Assembly (NCBI GenBank): GCA_002269645.1
Contig: NIVC01002817.1
Span: forward strand, 1 to 64,000
Length of the DNA stretch: 64,000 nt
Direction of reading: 5' to 3'
From: Macrostomum lignano
Lineage: Eukaryota
In this document: in pieces, positions 14,897 through 61,084 of the stretch
Layout of the letters: every line of letters starts with the position of its first letter
Position numbering within the stretch: the stretch's first letter is position 1
Program-made: the position numbers and the translations under genes
The notes under the pieces: model-generated
Databases searched by the model: none
The model's input: the letters and a program-made list of their open reading frames with translations, nothing else
What the model was told of the DNA's origin: nothing

Positions 14897-16547
14897 AGTT
14901 GAATTTTATCACGTCTTACGGTCTGTCTTTAAATCGAAGAATGTTGCGATTTTAGCATTGATCAAATTTTTGAGCAATAGAAAACAATTTAAACAATACG
15001 TAGGGGATAGAGCGACACTGCAACGTTCGTTAACCGCTTAACCGCTTCTTTCGCGTTTCAACTTTTTGATTTCCAAGAAGCATACTTGAATATTGATCAG
15101 ATTTAACAAAAATTGAAGTCTAAGAGAAATATGAAAAATTTTTGCATCCAGCGTATACGAAAATATTTGAATATAAAAAGCTTTTACATCACTTTTCATA
15201 ATCCTCTTTTTCTTGAAAGACATGCCAGCTCATTCTCCCCACCTGAACGCTACTTTTAAAATTACCCTAAACTGACATATCATGAGCAACATACGAAAAT
15301 GTCTCCGACATTGCTGCACTAAGTTTTAGTATTTTAATATGGAAATAAAATGAGTATTTTCCTCAAGTGGCCCATAAATAAAGTATATCAGGCCACCGGT
15401 TACGATATTTTTAAGGTACACTGCAAGTTTTTGGACTAAGCTGCCGTGAATTTGCAGAGGTTAATAATGAGGAATTTTACAAAATTCAGTGTATGACTGT
15501 ACTCATAACAAAAGATCAAGACAATTAAGTACATTTAAAAAACTGGTTATGGATAAAAGTGACGATTAGATTAGACATATGAATTCGTGTGCAGGAAAAA
15601 GTGATCCCAGCTCATAACTAACGTTTATTAAACTTTGTTAGCTGACGGTGTCGGTTGGAAAATGATAACATATTTGCTTGAACCGATCTGGCACTTTTAT
15701 TATTAAAGTTTTAGTCGCAAGCTAGACGCTGTCATGTCTACCATGGTATATCATTGTGTAGATTAAGCAGACTGCGCGAGACAAGCAAGTCCGCATATTG
15801 CAAATTATTTTCCTGCCATTAATACATTACATCGCACTATACAGACACTTATACAGAAGCAACATAATATTAATAAAATGGCTACATAGGCTTGCCAGTG
15901 TCAAAAAAAACTTAATTATAACCTAAGATCAGGTGCGCATGCAGAAAAACTGCATTTACGCCGATAAAGTTGCACACAACAAACATCGGTACATACTAAA
16001 CACGCCTTATTTACAGAGCGTCCGTAAAGAATCAGGTCAGTTCAGGACAAGACGAAGATTAAAAAAGAGAAAAAAGACAGGTTATGGCTTAGTGTGCACA
16101 TAGAGACATGCACTAACACGCACAAGTATGATATAATAAAACTTAATAACGCGGGCAGTTAAGACAGACGGAGAAAAAGCAAAATTCGACAGAAGCAAAA
16201 GTTGAAGCGTGTAAAAACGGTTGCCAAAGCATTCGATGAACAAAAAAAATTAGTCTGACCAAAAACAACAAAGACAAAATCCGAGACGCAGTAAATATCA
16301 GTGTGTGAGTCGCTAAAGTACACTGTCACGATTCGTGCGGAACAATGCAGATTGATGAAACAAACTGTGGGGGGAAGCTGATGCTGGCTGGGTCCAAGGA
16401 ACCAGCAGGTGCTAAAATAGATCATAAGAATAGTTTCAGCGAATTCAGAAGCTTGCAAGTGGAGCCCGACTCTGAGGACTCCTGTTGTCTTTTTCATTTG
16501 GGAATTAATTAACTTGCATTCAAGCAAGACTGAGTTGCACAAAGCTG

Positions 16548-17790
16548 GGTCAGCCAGCAACTGAGAACATGGGAGACTGGCCCAGCAACTGAGGATCTGG
16601 GAGGCTGGCCCAGCAACTGAGAATCTGAGGACTGGCCCAGCAACTGAGAATCTGGGAGGCTGGCCCAGCAACTGAGAAGCTGAGGGCTGGCCCAGCAACT
16701 GAGGATCTTGGAGGCTGGCCCAGCAACTGAGAATCTGAGGGCTGGCCCAGCAACTGAGAATCTGAGGGCTGACCCAGCAACTGAGGATCTTGGAGGCTGG
16801 CCCAGCAACTGAGGATCTGGGAGGCTGGCCCAGCAACTGAGAATCTGAGGGCTGGCCCAGCAACTGAGAATCTGGGAGGCTGGCCCAGCAACTGAGAATC
16901 TGAGGGCTGGCCCAGCAACTGAGAATCTGAGGGCTGACCCAGCAACTGAGAATCTGAGGGCTGGCCCAGCAACTGAGAATCTGAGGGCTGGCCCAGCAAC
17001 TGAGAATCTGAGGGCTGACCCAGCAACTGAGAATCTGAGGGCTGGCCCAGCAACTGAGAATCTGAGGGCTGACCCAGCAACTGAGGATCTTGGAGGCTGG
17101 CCCAGCAACTGAGGATCTGGGAGGCTGGCCCAGCAACTGAGGATCTGGGAGGCTGGCCCAGCAACTGAGAATCTGAGGGCTGGCCCAGCAACTGAGAATC
17201 TGGGAGGCTGGCCCAGCAACTGAGAATCTGAGGGCTGGCCCAGCAACTGAGAATCTGGGAGGCTGGCTCAGCAACTGAGAATCTGAGGGCTGACCCAGCA
17301 ACTGAGAATCTGGGAGGCTGGCCCAGCAACTGAGAATCTGAGGGCTGACCCAGCAACTGAGGATCTTGGAGGCTGGCCCAGCAACTGAGGATCTTGGAGG
17401 CTGGCCTAGCAACTGAGGATCTGAGGGCTGACCCAGCAACTGAGGATCTTGGAGGCTGGCCCAGCAACTGAGGATCTTGGAGGCTGGCCCAGCAACTGAG
17501 GATCTTGGAGGCTGGCCCAGCAACTGAGAATCTGAGGGCTGGCCCAGCAACTGAGGATCTTGGAGGCTGGCCCAGCAACTGAGGATCTGGGAGGCTGGCC
17601 CAGCAACTGAGAATCTGAGGGCTGGCCCAGCAACTGAGGATCTTGGAGGCTGGCCCAGCAACTGAGGATCTGGGAGGATGGCCCAGCAACTAAAAAATCT
17701 GGAAGGCTGGCCCAGCAACTGACACACTTGAAGGCTGGCCCAGCAACTGACACACTTGAAGGCTGGCCCAGCAACTGACACTCTGGGAGG
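16548..17790. repeat. 27/28-bp minisatellite (~45 copies), intergenic
   Basis: Unit gctggcccagcaactgagaatctgagg with ggagg/ttggagg variants; source of spurious ORFs 16159..17810. Confidence 0.96.
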
Positions 17791-18797
17791 CTGGCGCTGG
17801 ACCAATCCAATAATATGTAGTGCGCTCAGAGAAGCCGGCCAGAATCCATGACAAAGTTATTCAGTTGCTAAGCAAAAGCCCGCTGGTTGATCTGTCCAAT
17901 AGTGCAGTTCTGCCTCTCCAGAGTAAGAGCCCAAGCAGAGGAGCTGGCAATATAGAGGCCAACAGAGTTTAAGGAGATTGACAGTCAGGAAAGTCGGTGG
18001 CTCACAAAAAGGAACTATCATTAGTTAATGATATGCCGATACACCGGTACGTCGAGTGTGCAGGTGTTTCAACATACCGTAGCGAGGTCCTGATAAATGT
18101 ATAAAAACTTAGAATGCACAACATCGAATAACACAAATCATGAATATGTTTTCACAAATAAACTGAATGTTTTTAAAACTTATGATCAGTCTCGGATATG
18201 AATATGAAATTAGCGGCGGAATTGTTTAACTGACAGAGAGATCAGACACGGGGGCGGCACGGGGGTATTAATAATTTATAAGTTAATATCAGCATATCAA
18301 ATACCCGAACGAATAGGCAAACACAACACGCAAAGTCGAAGGCTGCTGGGGCCTATCAGTAAGACATGAATAAAAGCAGGGGGACAAGCAAGAAAATTGA
18401 GAAAAGCAACAACGGCAAAGTTCGGTATACGCGTCAATAATTGATAGGAACAGTGAATGCACAGTAATAAAAATTGGGCAATAATAAATTCACAAGAAGC
18501 TGCTTTTAGATTTCTAAAGTATAAAAACGCTTGTGAATTTTCTAATATTCGCACTCTGCGCCACCTGACTCGCAGCGGGTTGGGAGATTGTTTGTTTTAA
18601 AAACATTTGGTTCAAATTCGCGCCAAATGTTCGTAAAATCATTCCGGGTTGCTTTTAATCACTTTCCCGGTTTTATTGCTTTGTATGGCGCCAATTTAAA
18701 CTGACAAATTAACTCTACTTTAGTAAAACAAGTTTAAGAACTAAAACTAAGCCAGAGGGTTTAGTTAACAAGCAAGGGTTAAACTAGGCATCACAGG

Positions 18798-19763
18798 TCA
18801 CTGCTGCCCGAACCCATATTCCGTGTCTATGCCCGGATGGCCCTCCTTCTTGAACAGGCGCTCGGATTCCTCCTGCATCGATTCTTTGATCTTTTGAATG
18901 GCGGCGCTGTCGTTCTGGTCCTGCGGCCCGGGCGGGCCGGAGGGCGGCGGCGGGCCGCCCATGCCAGGGTGGGACTGCATGGCCTGCGACTGCTGCATGT
19001 GCATGTGCGGCTCCGTGTAGTGCAGGTACTCGCTGACCGGCGGCGGGCCCGGCGGCATCCCCGGGTGAGGACTACTGGACGGGCCGCCGCCACCGCCAGG
19101 GCCGCCGCCAGGGCCGCCGCCGGGGCCGCCGCCGCCCCCTCCGGCGCCGCCTCCGCCACCGCCGCCGTTCATCAGGTGACCGCCGGGCGGCATGTCGGAC
19201 GGCATCATCTGCGAGCCGTCGTGCATGTACGGCGGCCCGTGGTGCCCCATCGGCGGCACGTTCATCTGGCGCGGCTGCGGCGGCCCGTACATGGACTCGC
19301 CGCTAGCCGTGGAGTCCTGCGGCGAGGGCATCACGCCAGGCGTGCCCGGTCCCGGCGGGGGGCCGCCGCTGTAGGGCGAGGGCGAGGGCGCAGAGTACGG
19401 CCCTGAGCTGGGCGGCGGCGCCCCGCCCATGGGGTTCCAGCCGGGCCGGGGGCCGCCGCGGTACATGGGGTTGGGCGGCGGCAGTCTGGGCGGCATGCCG
19501 GGTCCTCCACCTGGTGGGCCGCCGGCGCCTCCGCCGCGCTGCATGCCGGGGGGCACCGGGCCGCCGCGGATGTCGACCGGGCCCATCGGGGGCTGCGGGC
19601 CCCCGCCAGCGCCGCCGCCGCCGGGACCGGGCGGACCGCCGGGGAAGAAATCGGACGGCGGCATCGGCGAAGGCCCGCCAGCCTGGGGATTCGGGTGCGG
19701 CGGCATGCCGGGCGGGAAGCCGGTGTTCACGAAGCCCTGCAGGTCAGGGTGCGCGGGCGGCAT
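18798..19763 (-). CDS. SSBP3: SSBP Pro/Gly-rich terminal exon
   Basis: 321-aa ORF with SSDP-like [19 protein letters not shown] and the C-terminal [13 protein letters not shown] motif. Confidence 0.88.
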   Translation of the reverse strand: MPPAHPDLQGFVNTGFPPGMPPHPNPQAGGPSPMPPSDFFPGGPPGPGGGGAGGGPQPPMGPVDIRGGPVPPGMQRGGGAGGPPGGGPGMPPRLPPPNPMYRGGPRPGWNPMGGAPPPSSGPYSAPSPSPYSGGPPPGPGTPGVMPSPQDSTASGESMYGPPQPRQMNVPPMGHHGPPYMHDGSQMMPSDMPPGGHLMNGGGGGGGAGGGGGGPGGGPGGGPGGGGGPSSSPHPGMPPGPPPVSEYLHYTEPHMHMQQSQAMQSHPGMGGPPPPSGPPGPQDQNDSAAIQKIKESMQEESERLFKKEGHPGIDTEYGFGQQ

Positions 19764-30154: not shown

Positions 30155-30982
30155 ATGCAGGCCTCATCAATTCTGCCGCTTCTCTGCTGCTGCGTCGCTT
30201 TCGGCTGCTCGCTGGGCGCCGAATTCGGCCCGGTGGGCTGCTTCGTGGACGGTCCAACTCGAGACTCAAAGGCAGGTCAACCATCGGGCCGTTACATGTA
30301 CTCGGTGTCCTCGTCAATGGTCCGCCTCAACCACATGACTCTGGAACTGTGCAGCGAGATCTGCGCCTATGGAAACTTTGAGTACTTTGGCATTCAGATT
30401 TCAGTGGAATGCTTCTGTGCAAACTCGTATGGCTCCCTCGGCCAGGCTGCCGACAGCGACTGCAACAGGAACTGCGGCGGCAACTCTGCTCAAGTCTGGG
30501 GACAGATTGGAGAAACTCCGTGTACCGGCAGGTCTACCTTCGTCCAGGTGAGTTCAATTGTTCTAACATAATATTCATTTATTTGGCATGACAAAGTAAA
30601 CTCAGAGTGCACGTGTGAGGGTGTGCAATCCTCAAGGCCGATTTAAACTGTGGTAAATCAGGATAAATCACACATGCTGGTACAGTACAAAATTTACTGA
30701 ATTGTAACTGCTCACTCAGTCAGTCTCACCAGAACTGCTGTGAACTCTCATTTGTCTTTCCAGTGTAGCAAGTACTTCACTTTTGCCGATCGAGTCTACC
30801 TGAACGTGACCTCCTCCAGCGGGCCCTTCTACCGCACCGAGCAGCCCGTGATGGGCCTGAACGAGTGTCTGATTCGCTGCCAGGCCGTGCTGCTCCACCT
30901 GGACGCCTGCCACCTGCTGAGATTCCCCGTTGTGCCGCACGAGCTGAAGGCCGTGGCTGGAGAATTCGCCGTTCGAGTGTGA
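30155..30982 (+). CDS. Secreted WSC-domain protein followed by a PAN/Apple-like exon
   Basis: Signal peptide; GCFVD..MTLELCSEIC..YFGIQISVECFCANSYGSLG....DCNRNCGGN; exon 1 30155-30547 (gtgagt donor); exon 2 starts at 30720 or 30764 with MGLNECLIRC..C..F; frame ambiguity at 30497-30501; 3' end uncertain. Confidence 0.78.
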
Positions 30983-31011
30983 GGGACGGCTTGATTCGGA
31001 ACAAGGACTCG

Positions 31012-31590
31012 TGGTTGCTGAAGACTTTGATTGCTGAAGCCTTTGATTGCTGAAGCCTTTGATTGCTGAAGCCTTTGGTTGCTGAAGACTTTGATTGCTG
31101 AAGCCTTTGATTGCTGAAGCCTTTGATTGCTGAAGCCTTTGGTTGCTGAAGACTTTGATTGCTGAAGCCTTTGATTGCTGAAGCCTTTGATTGCTGAAGC
31201 CTTTGATTGCTGAAGCCTTTGATTGCTGAAGCCTTTGATTGCTGAAGCCTTTGATTGCTGAAGCCTTTGATTGCTGAAGCCTTTGATTGCTGAAGCCTTT
31301 GATTGCTGAAGCCTTTGATTGCTGAAGCCTTTGATTGCTGAAGCCTTTGATTGCTGAAGCCTTTGATTGCTGAAGCCTTTGATTGCTGAAGCCTTTGATT
31401 GCTGAAGCCTTTGATTGCTGAAGCCTTTGATTGCTGAAGCCTTTGATTGCTGAAGCCTTTGATTGCTGAAGCCTTTGATTGCTGAAGCCTTTGATTGCTG
31501 AAGCCTTTGATTGCTGAAGCCTTTGATTACTGAAGCCTTTGATTGCTGAAGACTTTGATTGCTGAAGCCTTTGGTTGCTGAAGCCTTTGA
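31012..31590. repeat. 16-bp minisatellite (~36 copies)
   Basis: Unit gattgctgaagccttt. Confidence 0.96.
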
Positions 31591-32269
31591 TTTGTAAGAC
31601 GGTATGTTGCAAGACAAGACTGTCGAGACAAGAATTTTAGCTTACTGTCTTGTAGCGACAACTTTATGACTATTTCAATGTTTTCGGCTTGAGATCCATC
31701 AATTTTCAGTTTAGTGTCTCGTAGAATAAAAATGCTCTTAACCAAGTCAGTAGAAATTGTTAACTATTCTGTCAATATTTAATGTAAACAGACATGAATC
31801 GAGAATAAATCTGCAGATATGCATCACACAGTACAAAGTCTGAATGGTTGCATTTGGAAGAAAACTGCCGGCCCATGTATTTGATATTCCATTTTTGCTT
31901 GCATAGCCACATTACCATTTCTCATACTGGTTGTACAGGTGGGCAGGCCCGCATGCATATTCGCACCAAACACTAGGAATGCGACAACAACTCCACACTC
32001 CATGCAGGCTTTCATTTCCTTTCCAGTGACACCAAGCTTGTCTGTGCAGTTGGTTTCATGTTTTGAAATTTCAAATTGAAAAGATAAAAGTGATGCTCGC
32101 TGTCTCCGAAATTTTCTCTTTAAAATGTTTAACATACCTGACAACATTGCTTGCAATGCAATTTGAGCAAATTCGTACAGTTCAATTTCTTATTTTTCGG
32201 CTATATAGTCTGAACCACGATTTTCTTTTATTTTACCTGTAACAGGTAAAAAGTACCTGCTGATTAAGG

Positions 32270-34535: not shown

Positions 34536-35976
34536 CTACCACAAGTTGTGCAGCTTGCGCAACTTCTCGCGAAGCACATATGGCGTGCCTGTCAACAGAG
34601 CCTGACGTTTGTACTTTTCAACAAGACCCAAAACTTGCCTTATACTCTGAGAATGTGCGGTCGCAATAAGCAGCTCTTGAGCATCAGAGTTCTCATCATT
34701 ATAAACATCCCGGATCCAGGCCCGACTGACTTCATCGCTTATTTGCTGCAACTCATGCCGCAGAGCCCACAGCAGAGCATTGAAGTTCATGTAAAATTGT
34801 GTTGGGGAATTCGTTGCTTGCATTGGAAAGCATTCGGCAAGAACTGCTGACAAAAATTGAAATTTGGGTCGTTGATCGAACTCAAAGCAGAACTTCCACG
34901 CGGAGTCCCGGCTTCTCAGATGCCGCCAAACGAACTCCGTAGTTGCCTCATTCGCTGACCTCTCAGCGGACCAAGCCATGCCTCTGCTCACCGAGAGGCC
35001 TCTGCACTGACTCACGATTCTCTCTGCAGTTCCTCGGTAGCCAAACTTCAGGCAGGCCAGCGCTCTGAGAGCCTCCCGAGCTGAGCGGGCGCAGTCTGGC
35101 AGTCTGGCAATCAGCTCTGTGAGCGACTCCTGAGACTGCGGGCTGCAGTCGCCGTGGGAGAGACGCACCAGACACTCCCTCACCACGTCGTAGATCTCGT
35201 AGTACTCGAGGCTGTTGGCTTTCCGTATCGGATTCGTGTTTACAAACGGCATAATTTGGAACGGATGGAAGTAGAATGTGCCGGAATCATCTACTTGCCT
35301 GAGACTCTCAATGAACTTTAATAGCAGCTGAGGGAGCTGATCAATCACTGTTCTTAATATAATTGCAATACAGCACAGAGTCCGGTCCATGTTTCCATCC
35401 TTTTGCCCTACTCCTTTGAGGTAAAGATCTACATTGCTCAGGAAGAAGTGCTCCATGATCCGGCCGTGAGCATTGTCGGGCGAGCGACTGCTCTCCACAC
35501 AGCCAAGCAGAATCTGCAGCGACCTCCTCACGAGACTCACGAGGTTCCACTGCTCGACCGGCATCTCCTCCACCATTCGGAACGTGGTAGTCTTCGCGTG
35601 GTACGGCTTCAGGCCTTGCTGGTTGAAGCCGTCCTTGCTGCAGATGACCTTCTTGACCAGGTACTTGAGAGTGACAAACAGCTGGCCTTGGAGAGTAGTG
35701 AGACTTCTGAGCATCCGCTTCTCCAGGAAGCTGGTGCTCACACGGAGCTCCTGGCCTCCTCGACCAGGAGAGGCTGCGTGCACCACGTGACAGGGCGTTG
35801 AGTCGGAGTCGACATCTTGTTGTAGAGCCTGCAGAACAGACTTAGGTATGTTTGAGTTGAAGACTCGAAGAGGCTGGAGCGGCCTAATGCTCGGGTAGCA
35901 GCAAAGAAGATCGGCTAAGACGTTGTCAACGCCGGTTTTAGAGCAGACCCAACTGAAGCGAGTGCCGGGCTTGAGG
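34536..35976 (-). CDS. Exon 3: third catalytic Asp, Mab21 helical bundle and ~290-aa C-terminal extension
   Basis: ttttaattgcag acceptor, phase 1; Mab21 C-terminal signature motifs in the 416-aa ORF. Confidence 0.88.
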
Positions 35977-38113
35977 CTGCAATTAAAAGAGTTCAGCAGT
36001 TAGGGCAGAGCGATCTTCTAAAAAGCAGAAGTAAAACACAAAGCAGCAATGGATTTATAATAAGTGTAGAAATTGTAAATTATTACCGAATCCATCGCGA
36101 GAGATATGTCCATTGAGGTACTCATTCTGGAGGCTCGTCAGGGTGTTGCACTTGCATGGTCCTTTCGGGTGATGAATTCGACCTTGGATCAATCTCATCA
36201 CATCTATGTCAGACTCCTTTGCAGTTGGACCGTCCAAGGTCTTCAGACTGTTGCCCCAGCCTTCTGAGTAGCTTCCAACCACAAATATGCCATCGTATCT
36301 CAGTCTTTTTTGCATAATTTCTTGCAATACATCAGCTACAGCACTTTGGAGGGAAGCTCTGGAGTCCACGAATCCAGATTGAGTAAGAGCTGAGTGCAGC
36401 TTGATACTCAGCTCTGAGTCACTGAGTGCGTCACTGAAATGATTCAGTTCGAATGGATTGGTGTGAGGTATAAATTTTCCCTACTTCAAAGCAGCTGCAT
36501 GAAATTAACCTTAACTTACGTTTCCAGTAAAGTTGAGACTGGACTGCCATTCACATCAAAAGTTATCACCGGTTGACCGAGTTGCACTCCGTTAAGTAGC
36601 TGAGCAATTTTCTGATGACCGAAACGAAATGCAATATCGAGAGGTCGCTCGCCGCTGCTTGACTTAAGGTCAATGTCAGCACCAGACTTGAGCAGTAATT
36701 TCACTACATCACAATGCCCCCTCTGTGAGGCTATATGCAAAGCCGAGTAACCCCGGGCCGAAATGGAGTGAACATCAGCTTGCGCATTGATTAGAGAATT
36801 CACAACTTTAACATGACCATGGTGGGAAGCGATGTAAAGTGGTTGGTGCCCAATGCCTGTCCTAGCGTCAACGTCTGCTGAAGATTTAATGACAGACTCG
36901 ACAGTCAGGTGATGACCCCGCTGTACTGCTGCGTGCAGTGGTAAGTAACCCCACTTCGATGCGAGGTTAACATCAGCTTGAGCTTTGATGAGGCAGTCTA
37001 ACACACGGCTGTGACCATTCTGTGCAGCAATGTGAGCTGCCGTGAGACCGTTAACTGTTTGGATATTAAGGTCAGCATTTGATCCGATCAGGGACTCGAC
37101 GACCTCCCAGTGACCATGCTGCGCTGCTCTGTGCAAAGCTGAAAATCCCTTTCGCGACTGAAGATCGACATCGGCTTTGAACTTGATGAGCAAGTCCACA
37201 ATATCTTTAAAGCCATTAAGCGAAGCTATTTGTAGGACAGAGTCACCAAAACTTGTCGAATAGTTCACATCAGCTAGTGCCCTGAGGAGTAGCCCAACAA
37301 CTTGCACTTGACCACCAAGTGTCGCCGCGTACAGTGGAGACAATTCGACTTTTTCATGAAGACTAACGTCGGCTCCTGCTTTGATGAGTGCGTCGACTAC
37401 CCTCACATGGCCATACCTTGACGCGACACACAGAGGAGATGAGCCATTGCTTGCGAGAATATTTATTTCTGCTTGTGCACTGATGAGCGATTTGACAACT
37501 AGCTCGTGCCCCACTTGAGAGGCGATGTAGATTGGGCAGGAGCCGCTGCTGTTTCGAGCATTGACGTCGGCTTGCGCTTTGATGAGTGCGTCAACGACTC
37601 GCTGATGCCCGTTCTGCGATGCGATGTGGAGTGGCGAGAATCCGTCCAGTGTTTGAAAATTGACATCAGCCTGCGCACCAATCAGCAGATTCACGACGTC
37701 AATATGTCCATTTTGCACCGCTACGTACAATGGCGAAGTGCCACTCGATCCACTTGATAGATTCACGTCGGCTTGAGCTTTTACAAGCAAGTCCGCTACG
37801 TTTAGATGGCCATTCTGGGCTGCGATGTACAATGGGGGCGATGAGGATTCGCCAAGTTTAGAATGAATGTCAGCATCGGCCGCTGCTTTGAGCAGTCTGC
37901 GGACGGAGCGGTGCTGCCCGACCACGCAGGCCAGCTGCAGGGGGAGATCCTTGCTCCTCTGAACTCGCAGAACTCATCAACGCTCATGGCGCAGTTCAGA
38001 CACCGTTCGATCATTCTCAATTCGCCAGCTTCTATGGCAAACAAAAAGTCTCGAGCTGTCAGCTCCTGCTTGTCCTCGCAGTGTCGCTGGAGCGGTGTAG
38101 CTGCCTCCTGCAT
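34536..38113 (-). CDS. Ankyrin-repeat / Mab21 (cGAS-like receptor, cGLR) fusion protein, ~1130 aa, 3 exons
   Basis: Exon 1 38113-36520 (about 14 ANK repeats), donor AC|gtaagt; 86-nt intron; exon 2 36433-36087 (VVGSYSEG...SDIDVM); 110-nt intron; exon 3 35976-34536 (PAVDNVLA, LRVSTSFLEK, LKPYHAKTTTF, MEHFFLSNVDL). Needs +1 nt at 37940-37944 and ~35931. Confidence 0.85.
36087..36433 (-). CDS. Exon 2: nucleotidyltransferase lobe with GS and DxD motifs
   Basis: atttcag acceptor, phase 2; IFVVGSYSEGWGNSLKTLDGPTAKESDIDVMRL; donor G|gtaata. Confidence 0.88.
36520..38113 (-). CDS. Exon 1: ankyrin repeat array
   Basis: 33-aa repeats (S/T)PLxxAxxxGHxxVVxxLIxAxADVN; one missing C in a C run joins ORFs 37802..38113 and 36516..37925. 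Confidence 0.95.
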
Positions 38114-38726
38114 CGGTATGACGACGAACAGTTTTCAATGCTTCCGTGAAATAAACCTCGCGACCTGTGCCTAAAATTTGTACGAATAGACTTCAATGCG
38201 TGCATTATAGCATAGCATAGCATTAGCTATTTAAGTGTGTGCAGGCATTTTCGTTTTCCGCAACTGTTGGCAGCGAAGCTCTGGACCAATTAAAAGCAAT
38301 GTGTCTTTATATCTCTTTTAAACTTTCTGAGTTGATTTTTTAAATACAAGCTTGTTTGTTCTCATTCTGGTTATAAAATTATAAAATTCTGGTGAAAGGC
38401 CACGAGAGCGACCCGTTGAAAAGCAAAATCCGACAAACGTCAACTTAATTCATAGTTTTGACAAGTAGCTCATAGTTTAACCGTTCATTCTCAAAAAGCA
38501 GTGAAGCTCCTTGTACAAAACTTCATTGGTTTGAAATTACCTCAATTTCCATTTCGAATGGTCATCTTCAAAGAAGATCCAAGACAACATGGGCTCAAGT
38601 TATGGGGAAATGACATTAGGACACAGCTACAGTTTCCATGGTTGAATCATTCGCTCAAAAGTCGCCCCATCATCACTCCAAGTCCAGCAGCAGGTCCGTT
38701 GAGCGAAGGCTCGACTCGCTGCAAAC

Positions 38727-41344
38727 CTGAATCTCCAAATTCTCTAACTCAGCCTCCGACTGATGAAGCTCGTCTTGCTGCAGCTCGGCCGCAGCAGCAG
38801 AATCTCGCTGGCGCTTCTTTGCCTCTGCCAGCCGCTCCTGCAGAGCGTCCTCTTGGCGCTGCTGGGCCCACCGGTTGCTTGGGGACACATAGGGATGGTG
38901 TTGAAGTTAATACTCTAAACTCTGACTTCCGACTGTTCTCACTCCTCGACTGTCACTCCTCGACTGTCACTCTCGACTGTCACTTCCCAATTGTCACTTC
39001 CCGACTGTCACTCCCAGACTGTCACTTACCCGACTGTCACTACCTGACTGTCACTCCCAGACTGTCACTTACCCGACTGTCACTCCCCGACTGTCACTCT
39101 CGACTGTCACTCCCCAACTGTCACTCCTTAACTGTCACTTCCCGATTGTCACTTCCCGACTGTCACTCTCGACTGTCACTCCCAGACTGTCACTTACCCG
39201 ACTGTCACTCCCCGACTGTCACTCTCGACTGTCACTCCCCAACTGTCACTCCTTAACTGTCACTTCCCGATTGTCACTTCCCGACTGTCACTCTCGACTG
39301 TCACTCTCGACTGTCACTTCCCGATTGTCACTTCCCGACTGTCACTACCTGACTGTCACTCCCAGACTGTCACTTACCCGACTGTCACTCCCCGACTGTC
39401 ACTCTCGACTGTCACTCTCGACTGTCACTTCCCGATTGTCACTTCCCGATTGTCACTACCTGACTGTCACTCCAAGACTGTCACTTACCCGACTGTCACT
39501 ACCTGACTGTCACTCCCAGACTGTCACTTACCCGACTGTCACTCCCCAACTGTCACTCTCGACTGTCACTCCCCAACTGTCACTCCTTAACTGTCACTTC
39601 CCGATTGTCACTTCCCGACTGTCACTCTCGACTGTCACTCTCGACTGTCACTTCCCGATTGTCACTTCCCGACTGTCACTACCTGACTGTCACTCCCAGA
39701 CTGTCACTTACCCGACTGTCACTACCTGACTGTCACTCCCAGACTGTCACTTACCCGACTGTCACTCCCCGACTGTCACTCTCGACTGTCACTCCCCAAC
39801 TGTCACTCCTTAACTGTCACTTCCCGATTGTCACTTCCCGACTGTCACTCTCGACTGTCACTCCCCGACTGTCACTTCCCGACTGTCACTACCTGACTGT
39901 CACTCCCAGACTGTCACTTACCCGACTGTCACTACCTGACTGTCACTCCCAGACTGTCACTTACCCGACTGTCACTCCTTAACTGTCACTTCCCGATTGT
40001 CACTTCCCGACTGTCACTCTCGACTGTCACTCTCGACTGTCACTTCCCGATTGTCACTTCCCGACTGTCACTACCTGACTGTCACTCCCAGACTGTCACT
40101 TACCCGACTGTCACTACCTGACTGTCACTCCCAGACTGTCACTTACCCGACTGTCACTCCCCGACTGTCACTCTCGACTGTCACTCCCCAACTGTCACTT
40201 CCCGATTGTCACTTCTCGACTGTCACTCTCGACTGTCACTCCCCGACTGTCACTACCCGACTGTCACTACCTGACTGTCACTCCCAGACTGTCACTTACC
40301 CGACTGTCTCTACCTGACTGTCACTCCCCGACTGTCACTACCTGACTGTCACTCCCCGACTGTCACTACCCGACTGTCACTCCTTAACTGTCACTTCCCG
40401 ATTGTCACTTCCCGACTGTCACTCTCGACTGTCACTCTCCGACTGTCACTACCCGACTGTCACTACCTGACTGTCACTCCCAGACTGTCACTTACCCGAC
40501 TGTCACTCGCCGACTGTCACTTAAGTCACTACTTTCAGATCACCTCACAGGCCGCTATTCACCTTTTACCTTCAAGGCAGTTCGCTGCATCCAGCATCGC
40601 CGCGGCCACCTGCCGAGCCTCGCGCCGCCGCCAGAGAGTCTCCCGTTGCCTCTGCCGCTCTTCAGTCAGCTTTGAGTTCAGCAGCTGCAGCCCCACAAGC
40701 AGCTCAGCGGCCTCTGTAGTCGCCGCCTCCGAGCTGCCTTCCGCCTCTCTCGGCTCCTCAGCCGCTACTTCCGGCCGACCAGCACGATCCGGCGAGTCCA
40801 GCCGCCACCGTCAGCTGCCTGCGCCACGCCCGGCCGCGCCCGCCTCGCGTAGTCCGGCAGCGGCTGCTCTCGACGCTTCGCCGCCGCCGCCGCTGCCGTC
40901 ATCGTACCCGCCACCTTCTGCCAAGCGTCGCGGCCGACCTCGCGGAGAAACTCCTCCACGCGGGCCTTCGCGCGGCGCTCCTCACTGAGGCCCGACATGC
41001 GGTCCACCTCCGTGTGAGCGATGGAGGGCCCGCCTCGCTGCGCAGCTCTCCAGACCTCACCCAGCAGCTCAGCCTCACCCAGCATCTCAGCCTCACCCAG
41101 CATCTCAACTCCATCCTGATTAAAAATGTCAAGTTCCATCCTCATTAAACATCTCAGCCTCATCATCACCCAACATCACAGCTTCATCCTTACCGAGAAC
41201 CTCAGCCCGGTCCCGTAATTCCTTCTGTCCGCTGTCAATGCAGTCTCCCAGACTCCTCAGGCCTCGCCTCATCCTTGCGATGCTCTCAATGAATCTGACC
41301 GCTTTGCGCTGCAACAGCTCGGATGACAGTCGGGCAAAGTCCGC
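38727..41344 (-). CDS. Probable exons of an unidentified coiled-coil protein (about 41344-40570 and 38877-38727)
   Basis: GC-rich, Glu/Arg/Ala/Gln-rich frames bounded by cttcag acceptor and gtaaaa / gtttgc donors; internal frameshifts; no family recognised. Confidence 0.4.
38930..40530. repeat. Complex 12-14-bp minisatellite built on GACTGTCAC
   Basis: gactgtcactccc / gactgtcacttaccc / gactgtcactctc variants in higher-order blocks. Confidence 0.95.
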
Positions 41345-41374
41345 CTGAAGGAAATTTGGGGGGGGGCAGATGGA

Positions 41375-44300
41375 AATATGAGGGAATATGGGGAAATATG
41401 GGGAAATATGGAGAAATATGGAGGAATATGGGGAAATATGGGGAAATATGGAGAAATATGGAAAAGTAGGCAGAAATGTGCAGAAATATGCGGAAATATG
41501 GGGAAATATTGAGAAATATGGGGAAATGTGGGGAAATATGGGGAAATATGCAGAAATATGGGGAAATATGGAGAAATATGGGGAAATGTGGGGAAATATT
41601 GAGAAATATGGGGAAATGTGGGGAAATATGGGGAAATATGCAGAAATATGGGGAAATATGGAGAAATATGGGAAAATATGGGGAAATATGGAGAAAAATG
41701 GGGAAGTATGGGGAAATATGGGGAAATATGGGGAAGTATGGGGAAGTATGGGGAAGTACGGGGAAATATGGTGAAATATGGGGAAATATGGGGAAGTATG
41801 GGGAAGTATGGGGAAATATGGGGAAATATGAGGAAGTATGGGGAAGTATGGGGAAGTATAGGGAAATATGGGGAAGTATGGGGAAATATGGGGAAATATG
41901 AGAAAGTATGGGGAAGTATGGGGAAGTATGGGGAAATATGAGGAAGTATGGGGAAGTATGGGGAAGTATGGGGAAATATGGGGAAATATGATGAAGTATG
42001 GGGAAGTATGGGGAAGTATGGGGAAATATGGGGAAGTATGGGGAAATATGGGGAAATATGATGAAGTATGGGGAAGTATGGGGAAGTATGGGGAAATATG
42101 GGGAAGTATGGGGAAGTATGGGGAAATATGGGGAAATATGATGAAGTATGGGGAAGTATGGGGAAGTATGGGGAAATATGAGGAAGTATGGGGAAATATG
42201 GGGAAATATGAGGAAGTATGGGGAAGTATGGGGAAGTATGGGGAAATATGAGGAAGTATGGGGAAGTATGGGGAAGTATGGGGAAATATGGGGAAATATG
42301 ATGAAGTATGGGGAAGTATGGGGAAGTATGGGGAAGTATGGGGAAATATGGGGAAGTATGGGGAAGTATGGGGAAGTATGGGGAAATATGGGGAAGTATG
42401 GGGAAGTATGGGGAAATATGGGGAAGTATGGGGAAATATGGGGAAATATGAGGAAGTATGGGGAAGTATGGGGAAGTATGGGGAAATATGGGGAAGTATG
42501 AGGAAATATGGGAAAGTATGGGGAAATATGAGGAAATATGGGTAAGTATGGGGAAGTATGGGAAAATATGGGTAAGTATGGGGAAATATGGGGAAATATG
42601 AGGAAGTATGGGGAAGTATGAGGAAATATGGGAAAGTATGGGGAAATATGGGGAAGTATGGGGAAGTATGGGGAAATATGAGGAAATATGGGTAAGTATG
42701 GGGAAGTATGGGAACATATTGGTAAGTATGGGGAAATATGGGGAAATATGAGGAAGTATGGGGAAGTATGGGAAAGTATGGGGAAATATGAGGAAGTATG
42801 GGGAAATATGGGGAAATATGAGGAAGTATGGGGAAGTATGGGGAAGTATGGGGAAATATGGGGAAATATGGGGAAATATGATGAAGTATGGGGAAGTATG
42901 GGAAAATATGGGGAAGTATGGGGAAATATGGGGAAATATGAGGAAGTATGGGGAAATATGAGGAAGTATGGGGAAGTATGGGGAAGTATGGGGAAATATG
43001 GGGAAATATGATGAAGTATGGGGAAGTATGGGGAAGTATGGGAAAATATGGGGAAGTATGGGGAAATATGGGGAAATATGAGGAAGTATGGGGAAGGATG
43101 GGGAAGTATGGGGAAATATGGGGAAGTATGGGGAAATATGCAGAAATATGGGGAAATATGGAGAAATATGGGGAAATATGGGGAAATATGGAGAAAAATG
43201 GGGAAGTATGGGGAAATATGGGGAAATATGAGGAAATATGGGTCAGTATGGGGAAGTATGGGAAATTATGTGGAATTATGGGGAAATATGAGGAAATATG
43301 GGTAAGTATGGGGAAGTATGGGGAAATATGGGGAAATTGTGCAGACTTTGACTCTTTTATCCGACTAAAATTTTTATCCAAATTCTGTCGGTTCGCTTTT
43401 TTATCCACGTCGAAAAAACCATCGATTATTTTTATTTACTGTGATAAAAACCCACTGGCTTAATATGCTACTTTAAGTACAAATATGGACATGCTGTAGC
43501 TGAACAAAATATTGTTACATTTCTGTTTTGAAACTTTTAACCTGAACTTATTCAATCTTAGAGAATGACCGGATGGAACAGAGAGATATGGAGAAATATG
43601 GAAAAGTAGGCAGAAATGTGCAGAAATATGCGGAAATATGGGGAAATATTGAGAAATATGGGGAAATGTGGGGAAATATGGGGAAATATGCAGAAATATG
43701 GGGAAATATGGAGAAATATGGGGAAATGTGGGGAAATATTGAGAAATATGGGGAAATGTGGGGAAATATGGGGAAATATGCAGAAATATGGGGAAATATG
43801 GAGAAATATGGGGAAATATGCAGAAATATGGGGAAATATGGGGAAATATGGAGAAAAATGGGGAAGTATGGGGAAATATGGGGAAATATGGGGAAGTATG
43901 GGGAAGTATGGGGAAGTACGGGGAAATATGGGGAAATATGGGGAAATATGGGGAAGTATGGGGAAGTATGGGGAAATATGGGGAAATATGAGGAAGTATG
44001 GGGAAGTATGGGGAAGTATAGGGAAATATGGGGAAGTATGGGGAAATATGGGGAAATATGGGGAAGTATGGGGAAGTATGGGGAAGTACGGGGAAATATG
44101 GGGAAATATGGGGAAATATGGGGAAGTATGGGGAAGTATGGGGAAATATGGGGAAATATGAGGAAGTATGGGGAAGTATGGGGAAGTATAGGGAAATATG
44201 GGGAAGTATGGGGAAATATGGGGAAATATGAGGAAGTATGGGGAAGTATGGGGAAGTATGGGGAAATATGAGGAAGTATGGGGAAGTATGGGGAAGTATG

Positions 44301-45305
44301 GGGAAATATGGGGAAATATGATGAAGTATGGGGAAGTATGGGGAAGTACGGGGAAATATGGGGAAATATGGGGAAATATGGGGAAGTATGGGGAAGTATG
44401 GGGAAATATGGGGAAATATGAGGAAGTATGGGGAAGTATGGGGAAGTATAGGGAAATATGGGGAAGTATGGGGAAATATGGGGAAATATGAGGAAGTATG
44501 GGGAAGTATGGGGAAGTATGGGGAAATATGAGGAAGTATGGGGAAGTATGGGGAAGTATGGGGAAATATGGGGAAATATGATGAAGTATGGGGAAGTATG
44601 GGGAAGTATGGGGAAATATGGGGAAGTATGGGGAAGTATGGGGAAATATGGGGAAGTATGGGGAAGTATGGGGAAATATGGGGAAATATGAGGAAATATG
44701 GGTAAGTATGGGGAAGTATGGGAAAATATGGGGAAGTATGGGGAAATATGGGGAAATATGAGGAAGTATGGGGAAGGATGGGGGAGTATGGGAAAATATG
44801 GGGAAGTATGGGGAAATATGGGGAAATATGAGGAAGTATGGGGAAGTATGGGGAAATATGGGGAAGTATGGGGAAGTATGGGGAAATATGGGGAAATATG
44901 AGGAAATATGGGTAAGTATGGGGAAGTATGGGTAAATATGTGGAATTATGGGGAAATATGAGGAAATATGGGTAAGTATGGGGAAGTATGGGAAAATATG
45001 GGGAAGTATGGGGAAATATGGGGAAATATGAGGAAGTATGGGGAAGGATGGGGAAGTATGGGGAAATATGGGGAAGTATGGGGAAATATGGGGAAATATG
45101 AGGAAGTATGGGGAAGTATGGGGAAGTATGGGGAAATATGGGGAAGTATGGGGAAGTATGGGGAAATATGGGGAAATATGAGGAAATATGGGTAAGTATG
45201 GGGAAGTATGGGAAAATATGTGGAATTATGGGGAAATATGAGGAAATATGGGTAAGTATGGGAAGTATGGGAAAATATGGGGAAGTATGGGGAAATATGG
45301 GGAAA
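41375..45305. repeat. 10-bp satellite GGGGAA(A/G)TAT in two blocks
   Basis: Blocks about 41375-43335 and 43588-45305; source of all MGKYGE/PHISPYF ORFs. Confidence 0.97.
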
Positions 45306-45555
45306 TTGTGCAGACTTTGACTCTTTTATCCGACTAAAATTTTTATTCAAATTCTGTCGGTTCGCTTTTTTATCCACGTCGAAAAAACCATCGATTATTT
45401 TTATTTACTGTGATAAAAACCACTGGCTTAATATGCTACTTTAAGTACAAATATGGACATGCTGTAGCTGAACAAAATATTGTTACATTTCTGTTTTGAA
45501 ACTTTTAACCTGAACTTATTCAATCTTAGAGAATGACCGGATGGAACAGAGAGAT
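41448..45555. repeat. ~2-kb tandem duplication (41448-43587 / 43588-45555)
   Basis: A 255-bp unique tail occurs twice (about 43330-43587 and 45300-45555) and the satellite variant order restarts at 43588. Confidence 0.9.
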
Positions 45556-45880
45556 CCTTTCCCCTTCCTTCCTTCCCCTTCCTTCCTTCCTTCCTTCCTT
45601 CCTTCCTTCCCCTTCCTTCCTTCCTTCCTTCCTTCCTTCCTTCCTTCCTTCCTTCCTTCCTTCCTTCCTTCCTTCCTTCCTTCCTTCCTTCCTTCCTTCC
45701 TTCCTTCCTTCCTTCCTTCCTTCCTTCCTTCCTTCCTTCCTTCCTTCCTTCCCTTCCTTCCTTCCTTCCTTCCTTCCTTCCTTCCTTCCTTCCTTCCTTC
45801 CTTCCTTCCTTCCTTCCTTCCTTCCTTCCTTCCTTCCTTCCTTCCTTCCTTCCTTCCTTCCTTCCTTCCTTCCTTCCTTT
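45556..45880. repeat. (CCTT)n microsatellite
   Basis: Read directly. Confidence 0.98.
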
Positions 45881-46026
45881 AGAACTCCGGCAAGATAGAC
45901 AAGAAAATTTTTCTTTATCACAAAACATGATACTGAATATGGTCAGTGTTGAGTATTTACTTTAAATTTCACAATAACATTACCATAGTATTCAAACAAA
46001 ATTCTAAAATGTAATGTCTAATATAA

Positions 46027-48238
46027 TCAGGACACCAAAACACGAGTGCAAACAGGTGTTGAGTCTTTGTGTAATAAACTCCAATTGAAGCTAAGCCACC
46101 TGGCTGATTTTTGCTTGTCGGACCGCGCCCCAAACAGAGCCTTCAGCGCGGCCACCTGGCCGAGTCCGCAGGCCAGCACAGCAACCGCCAGGATGCCGCT
46201 GAATGTCGCAACCCGCCTGTTGAGGTCGTCGCTCAATGCTCGGCCTTCGACTTCCCGGGCCCGGTGCATCGTCTGGGCCGCCTCCGCCCGCACGAGCTGC
46301 TGGTGGACGGCCTCCAGCTCCGATTGCAGCAGCGTCAGCGCGGTGGGCGGGGTGACCCCGGCCTCCTCGGCCAGGGAGGGCGCCCGGCTCCTGTCCAGAG
46401 CGAACTGCACCACCTTGTGTGTCACTGTTGAGAACTCGTTGCCGAAGCAGAAGGCGTACGCGCCGCCGCCCATAAATTTGAACGCCCGTTCGTCTGAGCG
46501 CGCCCTTAGCTTGGAGTAGATCTTCTCGCCTGTCAGTTACGAATGCCAAACGTTATTGATTGTAGAAATATGCAATTAATATTGACAGGAAAGTTGGCAC
46601 GCGAAGGTGTATTCAGCACGCCAGTGAAGTATGAGACAGACTGGGCCTATGGGCTACGGTCTGCGATGCTTCACGCCTGCCCCTATCTTTGGCAGGTCAA
46701 GGCTGGTGGGAGGTCTGCACCCTCTATTTGCCGCTGGCAGCCGCAGACCCCACGCTGTCTCGCAAGTCGACCCAGGGTACTCGTCCCCGCGTGTGTTCAA
46801 GGCAGACCCTAGGGCTGCTGGACAGACTGGGCTCCGGCGCTGGCGCTGGCGACCCTATCCAGTGGCTTCGGCCGAATTTGGGTATGCGGGTCTGGCTCGC
46901 CAACCTGCAGGCCGTGGTACTGCCCAACGTACTCTCTAATGCCTAAGGTGTTGACCGTGCCGATGGGCTGGAAGGCCGGGGAGTAGTCCGGTAGCAAGCG
47001 GTCCCCCTCCTGGTGTCGGGCCAGCCTTGAGGGTTCTATTGGCCTACTGCCCGGTCAGGTGGAGCGGCCGGGTGGGTACCGCGCCCCTTTGAGGGTAGCC
47101 CACCAACCTTTTATCATGGCCTTCGAGCCGACTATGGATAACCACCGTCCATAGCGACGCGTCGGCCGTTCAGGATTAGCGGAATGGGCGCCCGCGCCTT
47201 CCCGCTGTGTCCCCTCCGGGACAGCCCTGCAGCTAAGTCAAGTAAGTCTAAGACAGGAAAGTTGTGGACACCCTGGACTCGGTCCTACATCGTCCTACAG
47301 CCATCGGAAAGGCAACTCCGCCCATTCCGCAGACTCTTGAGTACATGCAATCGGGCAGATACTGTACTCGACACGCACTCGCACACACGCTCACACGTGT
47401 ACACCCTCTGTGCCTTGGGGGTTGGCCCTCGTTGATGCATGAATCGCACTTTAGCCAATTTTCGTGAAGAGGCCCCAAATAAATATCGCGGAGTCGAAAG
47501 CCGTGGTCTGTGACTCGAGAGTCGTCTTCTGAGCTGCTGCCGTCATTCGTTGAGCTATCCTGTCCCCAGAAAGTTAGTACAGGTAGACTAGCATTTTCAG
47601 CTTCAAATGCGAGTGTTTGATGCTTCAAGTATATCCGGTTAATAACGTAAAGTCATCGTCGGTTGTTCGCTTTCGTTGTCAGACGATAAACATGCCCGTT
47701 GAAAACGAGGGTTAATCTTGAATGTAAATTAACGAAAAGTTACTTTTGGTTGGTTAATTTACCGCAGTTTAACTTTGGAAAAAGCGAATTCACGTTAATT
47801 AACCAAACACTGTGTGGGTTATTTCGGTTAACAAACTCGGAAATTAACGTATATTTACCCTCCGTAAAGTCAAGTAACGTCAAGTAACGTTTATTCACCT
47901 AAAATTACGTTAACTAACCTTCGGGCTAATAGTTAATTAGCGCCCAGAATATTAACCCTCGTTTTCAACGGGCAGTACACACAAGTACACATGAGGGACT
48001 TCGGACTTCAGAGGTTCTCACCTGTTGGCGAGCGGACTAGAAAGTCCACATCGTTGTTGCCGCCGCGTACGACGCGGAATCGCAGCAGAAACGAGTCGCG
48101 CGACTCTGATTTATCGAACGCCTGATGGAAGCAGAACTCCTCATTGTCTGGCAGCTCGAAGGCCAGTCGCTTCGGGTACTGGTCGAAGCATTGGGCAACG
48201 GCCGGCAGCGTGGCCAGCAGCAGCTGAAGGATCAGCAT
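46027..48238 (-). CDS. TMED7: p24 family cargo receptor (GOLD domain, p24-gamma; TMED7/TMED3-like), 2 exons
   Basis: Exon 1 48238-48022 (signal peptide, AFELPDNEEFCFHQ, FRVVRGGNNDVDF), donor G|gtgaga; exon 2 from 46529 (YAFCFGNEFSTVTHKVV, coiled coil, TM, GQVAALKALF); stop at 46027, or at 46091 if a base is missing in an A run. Confidence 0.9.
46570..47252 (+). mobile_element. Decayed LINE 3' fragment in the TMED intron
   Basis: Degenerate LTG...HACPYL knuckle; 3' tail gg.aatgggc...ccctgcagctaagtcaagtaagtc shared with 32600-32675. Confidence 0.45.
47693..47974. mobile_element. 282-bp MITE with perfect 24-bp TIRs
   Basis: tgcccgttgaaaacgagggttaat ... attaaccctcgttttcaacgggca; no clear TSD. 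Confidence 0.8.
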
Positions 48239-48831: not shown

Positions 48832-59421
<10,590 letters not shown>

Positions 59422-60044
59422 TGTCTTCAGCTGTCCGGGATGGGGAGGCAATGCAGGAGTAAGCGCAGCTCTGTAGCGTCAGGTGGGGAGCTTGGAGCAG
59501 TGGCAGTCTGAGCCTCCACCTGTGCTGCCGCGGTTATCTTATAGTCTGTGGCCCGGCAGATCTGGAAGGGATCTGCACGGGAAGTCAGGAGAGGAGAGTC
59601 ATGATGTGGGGTTGCAGCCTCACGTCCCATTGTTTGTTCCCGACTGCAAGCTCCCCCTTGCCGGGTGTCTTCTTGCCCCTCCTCTCCTCCTATTCCTCCC
59701 CAACACCGTGTTGCCGGCCCCGCTGTCGCCCGGGGAGACCATGCAGCGGGGCGGGTGATGAGATGATAAGGGAAGAGATAGTAAGGCTGAATAATTGAGC
59801 CAATTTTCAGCTTTCTGTCAAATATTATTTTCGCTGGACTTTTAGCTGTCTGTTTGCAGCCTCAACAGGCAAATATTCACGGTTGTGGCAAGACCATTAT
59901 TTTTTTCTTGAAGAATATAAAAGATTTTTTTATGAAAGCAGATCGAATACTCGTATTTGATTGCTTTGATTGAAATTGGCAAACTATTCTTTTTCATGCG
60001 AAAATTTTTCAATAGCCTAATGATTCAGAAAGCAGCTGCTGATA

Positions 60045-61030
60045 ATTTTGGCGCCGCAGGCACTCATTTTAGCGCCGCAGGCACTCATTTTAGCGCCGCA
60101 GGCACTCATTTTGGCGCCGCAGGCACTCATTTTGGCGCCGCAGGCACTCATTTTGGCGCCGCAGGCACTCATTTTGGCGCCGCAGGCACTCATTTTGGCG
60201 CCGCAGGCACTCATTTTGGCGCCGCAGGCACTCATTTTAGCGCCGCAGGCACTCATTTTAACGTCGCAGGCACTCATTTTAACGCCGCAGGCACTCATTT
60301 TTGTGCCGCAGGCATTCATTTTAGCGCCGCAGGCACTCATTTTAGCGCCGCAGCCACTCATTTTAGCGCCGCAGGCACTCATTTTAGCGCCGCAGCCACT
60401 CATTTTAGCGCCGCAGGCACTCATTTTAGCGCCGCAGGCACTCATTTTAGCGCCGTAGGCACTCATTTTAGCGCCGCAGGCATTCATTTTAGCGCCGTAG
60501 GCACTCATTTTAGCGCCGCGGGCACTCATTTTGGCGCCGCAGGCACTCATTTTGGCGCCGCAGGCACTCATTTTAGCGCCGCAGCCACTCATTTTAGCGC
60601 CGCAGGCACTCATTTTAGCGCCGCAGCCACTCATTTTAGCGCCGCAGGCACTCATTTTAGCGCCGCAGCCACTCATTTTAGCGCCGCAGGCACTCATTTT
60701 AGCGCCGCAGGCACTCATTTTAGCGCCGTAGGCACTCATTTTAGCGCCGCAGGCATTCATTTTAGCGCCGTAGGCACTCATTTTAGCGCCGCGGGCACTC
60801 ATTTTGGCGCCGCAGGCACTCATTTTAGCGCCGCAGGCACTCATTTTGGCGCCGCAGGCACTCATTTTAGCGCCGCAGGCACTCATTTTGGCGCCGCATG
60901 GTACTCATTTTTGTGCCGCAGGCACTCATTTTAGCGCCGCAGGCACTCATTTTAGCGCCGCAGGCACTCATTTTAGCGCCGCAGGCACTCATTTTTATGC
61001 CGAAGGCACTCATTTTTATGCCGAAGGCGC
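60045..61030. repeat. 21-bp minisatellite (~47 copies)
   Basis: Unit cattttagcgccgcaggcact; source of the AAGTHFS ORF. Confidence 0.96.
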
Positions 61031-61084
61031 TATATTTTGGTTCCCTCAAGAAAAAGTATTGATTACTACAGCGACTCACAAGGT

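Follow-up and report, generated by a model that had tools for sequence, protein, structure and literature searches.

The gene reported here is to be compared with the cGAS-like receptors (cGLRs), for which Li et al. 2023 (PMC9980059) give the active-site motif h[QT]GS [X8-20] [DE]h[DE]h [X50-90] h[DE]h. In that survey, "most" platyhelminths are without cGLRs, and the 13% of cGLRs with more than one domain include fusions to ankyrin (ANK) or TPR repeats. Its Table S2 lists PAA accessions of the flatworm Macrostomum lignano with an Ank_2 domain, and entries 89-93 of its Table S3 are five M. lignano catalytic domains that were purified, with the ANK part trimmed, for a screen of 140 enzymes. In Table S3, the Note column singles out the 15 active enzymes that were taken forward for detailed study, and it is blank for all five M. 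lignano domains. Table S5 of the same paper, which does not include M. lignano, gives 0 STING proteins in the tapeworms listed, and a 2026 planarian study reports neither cGAS nor STING in Schmidtea. In the literature we found nothing specific on STING in Macrostomum and no paper on the function of ANK-cGLR fusions. Here, we describe an ANK-cGLR gene in a 64,000-nucleotide stretch of M. lignano DNA (positions 1 to 64,000 of contig NIVC01002817.1, assembly GCA_002269645.1; hereafter, the window).

The ANK-cGLR architecture in M. lignano was already catalogued in 2023, and what is new is this unannotated locus and its sister copy on another contig. An original prediction, made from the letters of the window alone, had correctly supposed the host to be a flatworm (the K2P exon of the window is 99% identical to BOX15_Mlig023486g3 of M. 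lignano, and window 38832-64000 matches contig NIVC01002817.1 at 100% identity and with unchanged coordinates). Its suggestion of an unrecognised immune signalling branch finds no support, as M. lignano ANK-cGLRs are present in Tables S2 and S3 of Li et al. and the catalytic domains of five have been purified. We propose that the window holds an unannotated, decaying three-exon duplicate of an ANK-cGLR gene, and that the intact members of its family are ligand-activated synthases of a nucleotide messenger. To this reading as a whole we assign a probability of about 0.6.

Gene structure and catalytic domain

Splice sites, phases and comparison with paralogues join four minus-strand open reading frames (ORFs) at window positions 38113-34536 into a single three-exon gene. 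The ANK ORF (36516-37925, 469 aa) terminates at a GTAAGT donor starting at 36519, so placed that exon 1 ends in ...VSTLLE plus 2 nt of the following codon (phase 2). Exon 2 opens in phase at 36433 and is translated as ...VVGSYSEGWGNSL...ESDIDVM (in a longer extract, ...DALSDSELS...IFVVGSYSEGWGNSLKTLDGPTAKESDIDVM...NGHISRDGF). From the donor at 36086 the gene continues at 35976 in phase 1 with ASSPALASVGSALKPA, followed, as assembled, by a stop; when one base is added after 35931, exon 3 goes on as VDNVLADLLCCYPS... into a 416-aa ORF that runs up to the TAG. Adding one base at the C5 run (37944-37940) likewise joins MQEAAT...ARISP to LQLACVVGQH..., and the joint is itself an ankyrin repeat; 58 residues from the ATG at 38113 precede this frame join. 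An uninterrupted reading frame across the exons is not found in the window copy, which needs these two +1 corrections, and the joined model is 1127 aa long.

The paralogues lead to the same model. In the annotated paralogue P0002, both introns match those of the window gene in position and phase (105 nt at the ANK|NTase boundary, where NTase stands for nucleotidyltransferase, and 80 nt at ...GY|ASSPA). Across the exon 2/3 junction and the second frameshift, paralogues read ...NGH..G[FY]AS[NS]PA....L[KR]PA[VL]D.V.A..LC.YPPI.PL, which is exactly the corrected reading of the window. A tblastn search detected no second copy of the gene within the 64-kb window, and blastn gave no matches between the window and the P0002 locus. 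No annotated protein corresponds to the window locus, the closest being 68% identical in the catalytic part and 48% in the ANK part. By these sequence comparisons, the ANK and Mab21/cGLR parts belong to one gene and the join between them is real. The original prediction had made the same join of four ORFs, and the in-phase splice sites, the P0002 introns and the open sister copy all bear it out, down to the GTAAGT donor at 36519, the intron lengths of 86 and 110 nt and every coordinate it gave.

The 5′ end of the gene (window 38113-38180; sister, L003 20650-20720) may be incomplete in our model. In many paralogues, a hydrophobic segment (...AVAVLMQA...) places the start about 15-25 residues farther upstream, and the window ATG aligns with the internal M of this segment. 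In-frame stops precede the ATG by 8 codons in the window copy and by 9 in the sister, and an upstream extension of the ORF was rejected on account of these stops in both copies. An acceptor-like TTTTAG site is located about 60 nt upstream of the ATG. Given the early starts of paralogues, the upstream stops and this site, a short 5′ coding exon may be absent from the model.

The N-terminal part of the protein is an ankyrin solenoid. In the 469-aa ORF, Pfam Ank_2 matches at 5.7e-120 and Ank at 7.9e-85 in 12 stretches, and about 14 repeats follow one another at a spacing of 33 residues, including the repeat that spans the first frameshift. This is also the number of repeats originally predicted.

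The catalytic part carries the motif VVGS-X20-DIDV-X53-VDN, which fits the cGLR rule of Li et al. 2023 on both spacings. It departs from the rule in two minor points, a V at the position preceding GS, where the rule has Q/T, and an N following the third Asp; both are common to family sequences that Li et al. accepted as cGLRs. In the family alignment, GS and DxD are invariant (G53, S54, D75 and D77 in alignment numbering, together with H88), and the third Asp is near-invariant, being His in one paralogue (P0022). A global hhalign comparison with a small cGAS/cGLR alignment, covering both lobes (98.9% probability), places VVGSYSEG on NTGSYYEH (G212 and S213 of cGAS) and ESDIDVM on NEFDVMF (E225 and D227). 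The local comparison (97.9%, E = 3.7e-13) begins at the third Asp, runs through the helical bundle to its end and places AVDNV on SVDIT of cGAS (D319). When the family profile was run against the PDB with HMMER, it matched cGLR1 (8gjy, 3.5e-8), mouse cGAS (1.8e-7 to 1e-6), human cGAS, and MAB21L1 (about 8e-3), all of these matches covering the C-terminal helical lobe only.

An AlphaFold2 (AF2) model of the 595-aa C-terminal part has a predicted local distance difference test (pLDDT) score of 75, and Foldseek ranks MAB21L1, MB21D2 and Sp-cGLR1 first among its structural matches, ahead of CdnG, ClCdnE and OAS1. Taken together, profile and structure comparisons support by computation an intact catalytic triad in a cGLR fold, and both the intact motif and the Mab21/cGLR fold had been predicted from the letters of the window. 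Single-sequence searches with the catalytic part (Pfam, and phmmer against the PDB) gave only a weak match to CRM1_C/exportin (E about 1e-3), which was treated as chance because just one family member out of 12 has it. An H-x4-C-x-C-x13-H pattern, invariant or nearly so across the family, is located between DxD and the third Asp; it may be a zinc site, placed elsewhere than the zinc thumb of cGAS.

Downstream of the helical lobe, the protein ends in a domain that is kept in all full-length paralogues. Its profile has no sequence match in Pfam or the PDB. A separate AF2 model (pLDDT 79) consists mainly of helices in a loosely TPR-like arrangement, plus a small beta element, and it has no significant Foldseek match, the best hits (TRIF-NTD, Fis1 and Rap/NprR) reaching E = 0.27. 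Of all parts of the protein, this domain, which the original prediction had not singled out, is the one least understood.

The sister copy and the state of the window copy

On contig NIVC01000876.1, in the flank of the K2P locus, we found a sister of the window gene (locus L003 20275-23600) that is 98.06% identical to window 35241-38571. It has identical splice sites and the same three-exon structure, and it remains without a stop for 896 codons, to the end of the sequence read. On a third syntenic contig (L004), no cGLR copy was reached within the 10-kb flank. From their sequences, there are at least two near-identical copies of the gene, which are allelic or homeologous.

Base-by-base alignment of the two copies shows an extra G in the sister at both predicted frameshift sites, TCCCC[G]CTG (37941/37940) and CCGGC[G]GTT (35931/35930). 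With the base restored, the first site encodes ARISPLQLACVVGQ, an ANK repeat at which paralogue P0178 has MRGSPLQLACAFGQ, and the second encodes SALKPAVDNVLA, where the paralogue consensus is L[KR]PA[VL]D.V.A. Relative to the sister, the window copy therefore bears two 1-nt deletions in addition to a 9-nt in-frame deletion that removes K-P-E from a conserved motif (among outgroup paralogues, K is found in 10/13, P in 7/13 and E in 11/13). When 14 paralogues were used to polarise the differences, five substitutions (N251S, I778T, T786M, M803I and A830V) and the KPE deletion were derived in the window copy, and one change was derived in the sister.

On this comparison, we lean slightly toward the view that the window copy is a recently inactivated duplicate rather than an assembly artefact. 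The main alternative, that both frameshifts are consensus errors of a long-read assembly and that the gene is intact, with 15 substitutions and the KPE deletion as its differences from the sister, is a serious possibility, if not the one we would choose. It would account for a frame that is otherwise clean over 1127 codons with its conserved residues retained, for the fact that all three 1-nt differences between the copies (one of them in the 5′ untranslated region, at 38119) are bases missing from the window contig, and for a divergence that is lower in coding sequence (0.9%) than in the flanks (about 2%). However, neither site is a long homopolymer in the sister (C4-G-C and GG), and no frameshift is present in about 6.7 kb of coding sequence elsewhere in the window, of which the gag and pol genes of a BEL/Pao element make up 5.8 kb. 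Moreover, miscalled indels cannot yield a 9-nt deletion in a conserved motif together with five derived substitutions against one in the sister, which counts against the consensus-error explanation. For the K2P protein, the records give the same sequence on each of the three contigs that carry it. The original prediction had placed the two 1-nt corrections correctly, the sister having the base at both, although they are not the simple homopolymer miscounts it took them for. Its assumption that they are sequencing errors is unproven, and the 9-nt deletion and the excess of derived substitutions fit real decay. The positions of all features are collected in Table 1.

Table 1. Positions of the exons, introns, catalytic motifs, domains and lesions of the window gene, and of its sister (window coordinates unless a contig is named)
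Feature	Position	Strand	Description
Exon 1	36520..38113	-	Presumed ATG 38113-38111, N-terminal cap, ~14 ankyrin repeats
Intron 1	36434..36519	-	86 nt, GTAAGT...TTTCAG, phase 2
Exon 2	36087..36433	-	Linker helices and N-terminal half of NTase core
Intron 2	35977..36086	-	110 nt, GTAATA...TTGCAG, phase 1
Exon 3	34536..35976	-	Third catalytic Asp, Mab-21_C helical lobe, C-terminal domain; stop TAG 34538-34536
G585-S586	36276-36271	-	GS motif codons, exon 2
D607-I-D609	36210-36202	-	DxD motif codons, exon 2
H-x4-C-x-C-x13-H (H620, C625, C627, H641)	36171-36106	-	Exon 2, between DxD and third Asp
D665, third catalytic Asp	35927-35925	-	Exon 3
Mab-21_C helical lobe	about 35822-35334	-	Exon 3
Family-specific C-terminal domain	34539..35306	-	~255 aa, model residues 872-1127
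Frame disruption 1	37940..37941	-	One base missing; window TCCCCCTG, sister TCCCCGCTG
Frame disruption 2	35930..35931	-	One G missing; window CCGGCGTTG, sister CCGGCGGTTG
9-nt in-frame deletion relative to sister	35547..35548	-	Drops K-P-E of conserved EQW-KPE-NLV motif
Sister ANK-cGLR gene	L003 20717-23600, NIVC01000876.1		Open as far as read, unannotated

The Macrostomum family and its proposed function

A search with the catalytic part of the window protein retrieved 34 proteins, all from M. lignano and 33-68% identical to the query, many of which combine ANK repeats and Mab-21_C in a single chain. In an exhaustive search of 1.84 billion representative proteins, the family profile has 583 matches with E <= 1e-3, of which 82 reach E <= 1e-30; all six of the strong relatives (E <= 1e-30) that were looked up belong to M. 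lignano (6/6). Weaker matches, bivalve proteins included, are confined to the Mab21 part, and those outside Macrostomum span only profile positions of about 110-280. ANK repeats and the orphan C-terminal domain are present in every full-length family member. As far as these searches go, the family is a large expansion so far found only in M. lignano, and it is one already classed as cGLRs: four of the five Table S3 sequences of Li et al. can be aligned with the window protein over their whole length, with every invariant residue in common. Three gene models (P0176, 1346 aa; P0021, 1036 aa; P0009, 997 aa) contain two cGLR modules each. These could be tandem fusions, like the multi-cGLR proteins of Li et al., or merged neighbouring genes.

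We propose that the intact members of this family would synthesize a nucleotide second messenger upon activation by a ligand. In such a protein, the ANK solenoid, the C-terminal domain or both would take the place of the nucleic-acid-binding surfaces of cGAS and would gate the catalytic cage, whether by auto-inhibition or by binding a ligand other than a nucleic acid, such as a protein. The large number of divergent paralogues may represent the kind of diversification that is typical of immune receptors.

It is also conceivable, though we consider it unlikely, that the family has the cGLR fold but makes no cyclic nucleotide messengers, acting instead as a Mab21L-like scaffold or catalyzing another NTase reaction, such as protein or RNA nucleotidylation, in which case no STING-type pathway would be implied. 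The five M. lignano catalytic domains without an "active" note in the 140-enzyme screen weakly favor this explanation. It would also agree with the residue before GS, which is V, M, L or F in place of the published Q/T, with the top structural matches MAB21L1 and MB21D2, both of which are without a known product, and with the lack of STING in planarians and in the tapeworms of Table S5. However, paralogues that are only 33-68% identical keep GS, DxD and the third Asp with little or no exception, which argues for selection on catalysis, and the cGAS nucleotide-contact motifs R-x-S...E-K and Y-H-x-K-T are retained. The screen, moreover, used ANK-trimmed domains and nucleic-acid ligands only, which makes its negative result weak.

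A bolder version of messenger synthesis is a STING-independent cyclic-nucleotide immune pathway, in which the ANK repeats or the C-terminal domain would sense proteins or peptides and the product would act on a receptor new to animals. This version would explain both the inactivity of the trimmed domains with nucleic acids and the reported absence of STING from other flatworms, but we regard it as speculative and rather improbable. Finally, the idea that the ANK and Mab21-like ORFs are separate neighbours or unrelated, joined by coincidence, draws on the frames being interrupted as assembled, and it is effectively refuted by dozens of annotated paralogues with ANK and cGLR in one protein, by the same intron positions and phases in P0002, and by a sister copy that is open through all three exons.

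Several results weigh against our proposal of a decaying duplicate in a family of messenger synthases. With regard to decay, no stop other than those of the two shifts occurs in 1127 codons, and bases missing always on the window side also resemble long-read consensus error. The 6:1 asymmetry of derived changes is only suggestive (one-sided P about 0.06), the Ka/Ks ratio of 0.47 between the copies, based on just 25 differences (10 synonymous and 15 non-synonymous), speaks for neither reading, and only 2 of 111 highly conserved family positions deviate in the window copy, which is no worse than in annotated paralogues. Neither copy is annotated in GCA_002269645.1, and the sister was read for only 896 of about 1130 codons. 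With regard to function, the five purified family domains are absent from the 15 enzymes marked as active. With regard to the fold, the pLDDT of the NTase core in the AF2 model is only 50-60, and Pfam Mab-21_C (PF20266) scores 18.0 bits on the 416-aa ORF against a gathering cut-off of 24.1. The joined 595-aa core has no Mab-21_C match in Pfam, nor is there a match to PF03281 (Mab-21); paralogues P0002, P0023 and P0027 pass PF20266 with 25-36 bits. Of the two domain types that had been predicted, Pfam thus recovers the ankyrin repeats (Ank_2, 5.7e-120) and leaves Mab-21 under its threshold, and membership in the Mab21/cGLR family rests on the profile and structure comparisons.

The assembly has no gene models for either the window locus or its sister on NIVC01000876.1, and the published count of M. 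lignano cGLRs is therefore an underestimate. If the window copy is decaying, pseudogenes sit among live copies in this repertoire. Macrostomum is the one flatworm lineage known to keep cGLRs and to have greatly expanded them, with 82 representative clusters at E <= 1e-30, whereas cGAS and STING are reported to be missing from planarians and tapeworms. RNA interference and transgenesis are established in M. lignano, so the ANK-cGLR family is open to experiment, and the sister copy, probably not the window copy, is the one to study.

Genomic neighbourhood and comparison with known systems

Between the cGLR gene and a p24/GOLD exon (46027-46473), the window contains several tandem-repeat families (38501-45928), with a GC skew of up to 0.87 at 42-44 kb; positions 38571 and 45901 are 7.3 kb apart in the window, and the corresponding interval on the sister contig measures about 3.7 kb. 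Farther along, a BEL/Pao retrotransposon with long terminal repeats (50282-56079 on the minus strand, within 48832-59421) has an unbroken gag of 665 aa (DUF1759) and a pol of 1281 aa (Peptidase_A17, RVT_1, Integrase_H2C2 and DUF5641). The annotation of the K2P channel gene BOX15_Mlig023486g3 encloses it, and because this gene occupies 10.6 kb here versus 3.4-3.6 kb on the two sister contigs, the element looks like a copy-specific intronic insertion. Integrase-core fragments (rve and Integrase_H2C2) of a second retroelement are found at the window edge (62847-63938, minus strand). Minisatellite-like arrays at 6814-7686, 16159-17810, 30716-31617, 56364-56894, 57648-58040 and 59957-61274 are open in several frames on both strands, giving rise to long spurious ORFs. 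Likely host exons encode part of a Na+/H+ exchanger (4434-4967, minus strand, E = 6.5e-23), a Pro/Gly-rich ORF with no Pfam match (18798-19763, minus strand), and an ORF with a signal peptide and a WSC domain (30155-30571, plus strand, E = 2.4e-13).

OAS and the bacterial cGAS/DncV-like nucleotidyltransferases (CD-NTases) of the cyclic oligonucleotide-based antiphage signaling systems (CBASS) have the same NTase cage of the Pol-beta type. Their Foldseek matches are weaker (E = 0.1-0.6), no similarity was detected at the sequence level, and the domain context differs. Human and mouse cGAS (MB21D1) are closer, sharing with the window protein the Mab21 NTase cage, GS, [DE]x[DE] and the third Asp, as well as the RxSxS..EK and YHxKT motifs. 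Unlike cGAS, however, the window protein is without a basic DNA-binding N-terminus and without a zinc thumb at the cGAS position, its core is shorter (53 residues from DxD to the third Asp), and it has ANK repeats at its N-terminus as well as about 255 additional residues forming a C-terminal domain. In structure, the AF2 model is best matched by MAB21L1 and MB21D2 (PDB 5eom, 5eog and 7lt1; E = 3e-4 to 8e-4), although the TM-scores on the target are low (0.41-0.47). MAB21L1 acts in development and has a single domain, whereas in M. lignano the acidic triad is kept across a large expanded family.

The invertebrate cGLRs fused to ANK, TPR or death domains, such as those of the coral Stylophora pistillata (Li et al. 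2023, Fig. 1C/4C), likewise combine a cGLR with protein-interaction repeats and likewise form lineage-specific expansions, in a different phylum. Most similar of all are the M. lignano ANK-cGLRs catalogued by Li et al., among them PAA86972.1 (BOX15_Mlig012742g2), PAA45980.1, PAA57558.1, PAA93208.1, PAA68676.1, PAA88786.1 (P0179) and PAA61028.1 (P0180). Like the window protein, they consist of ANK repeats, a cGLR and the C-terminal domain, with GS/DxD/D and H..C.C..H invariant, and where checked they also have the same three-exon structure. Their identity to it is only 32-67% in the catalytic part and does not exceed about 50% when full-length proteins are compared. In contrast to these catalogued genes, the window copy and its sister are unannotated, and the window copy is frameshifted.

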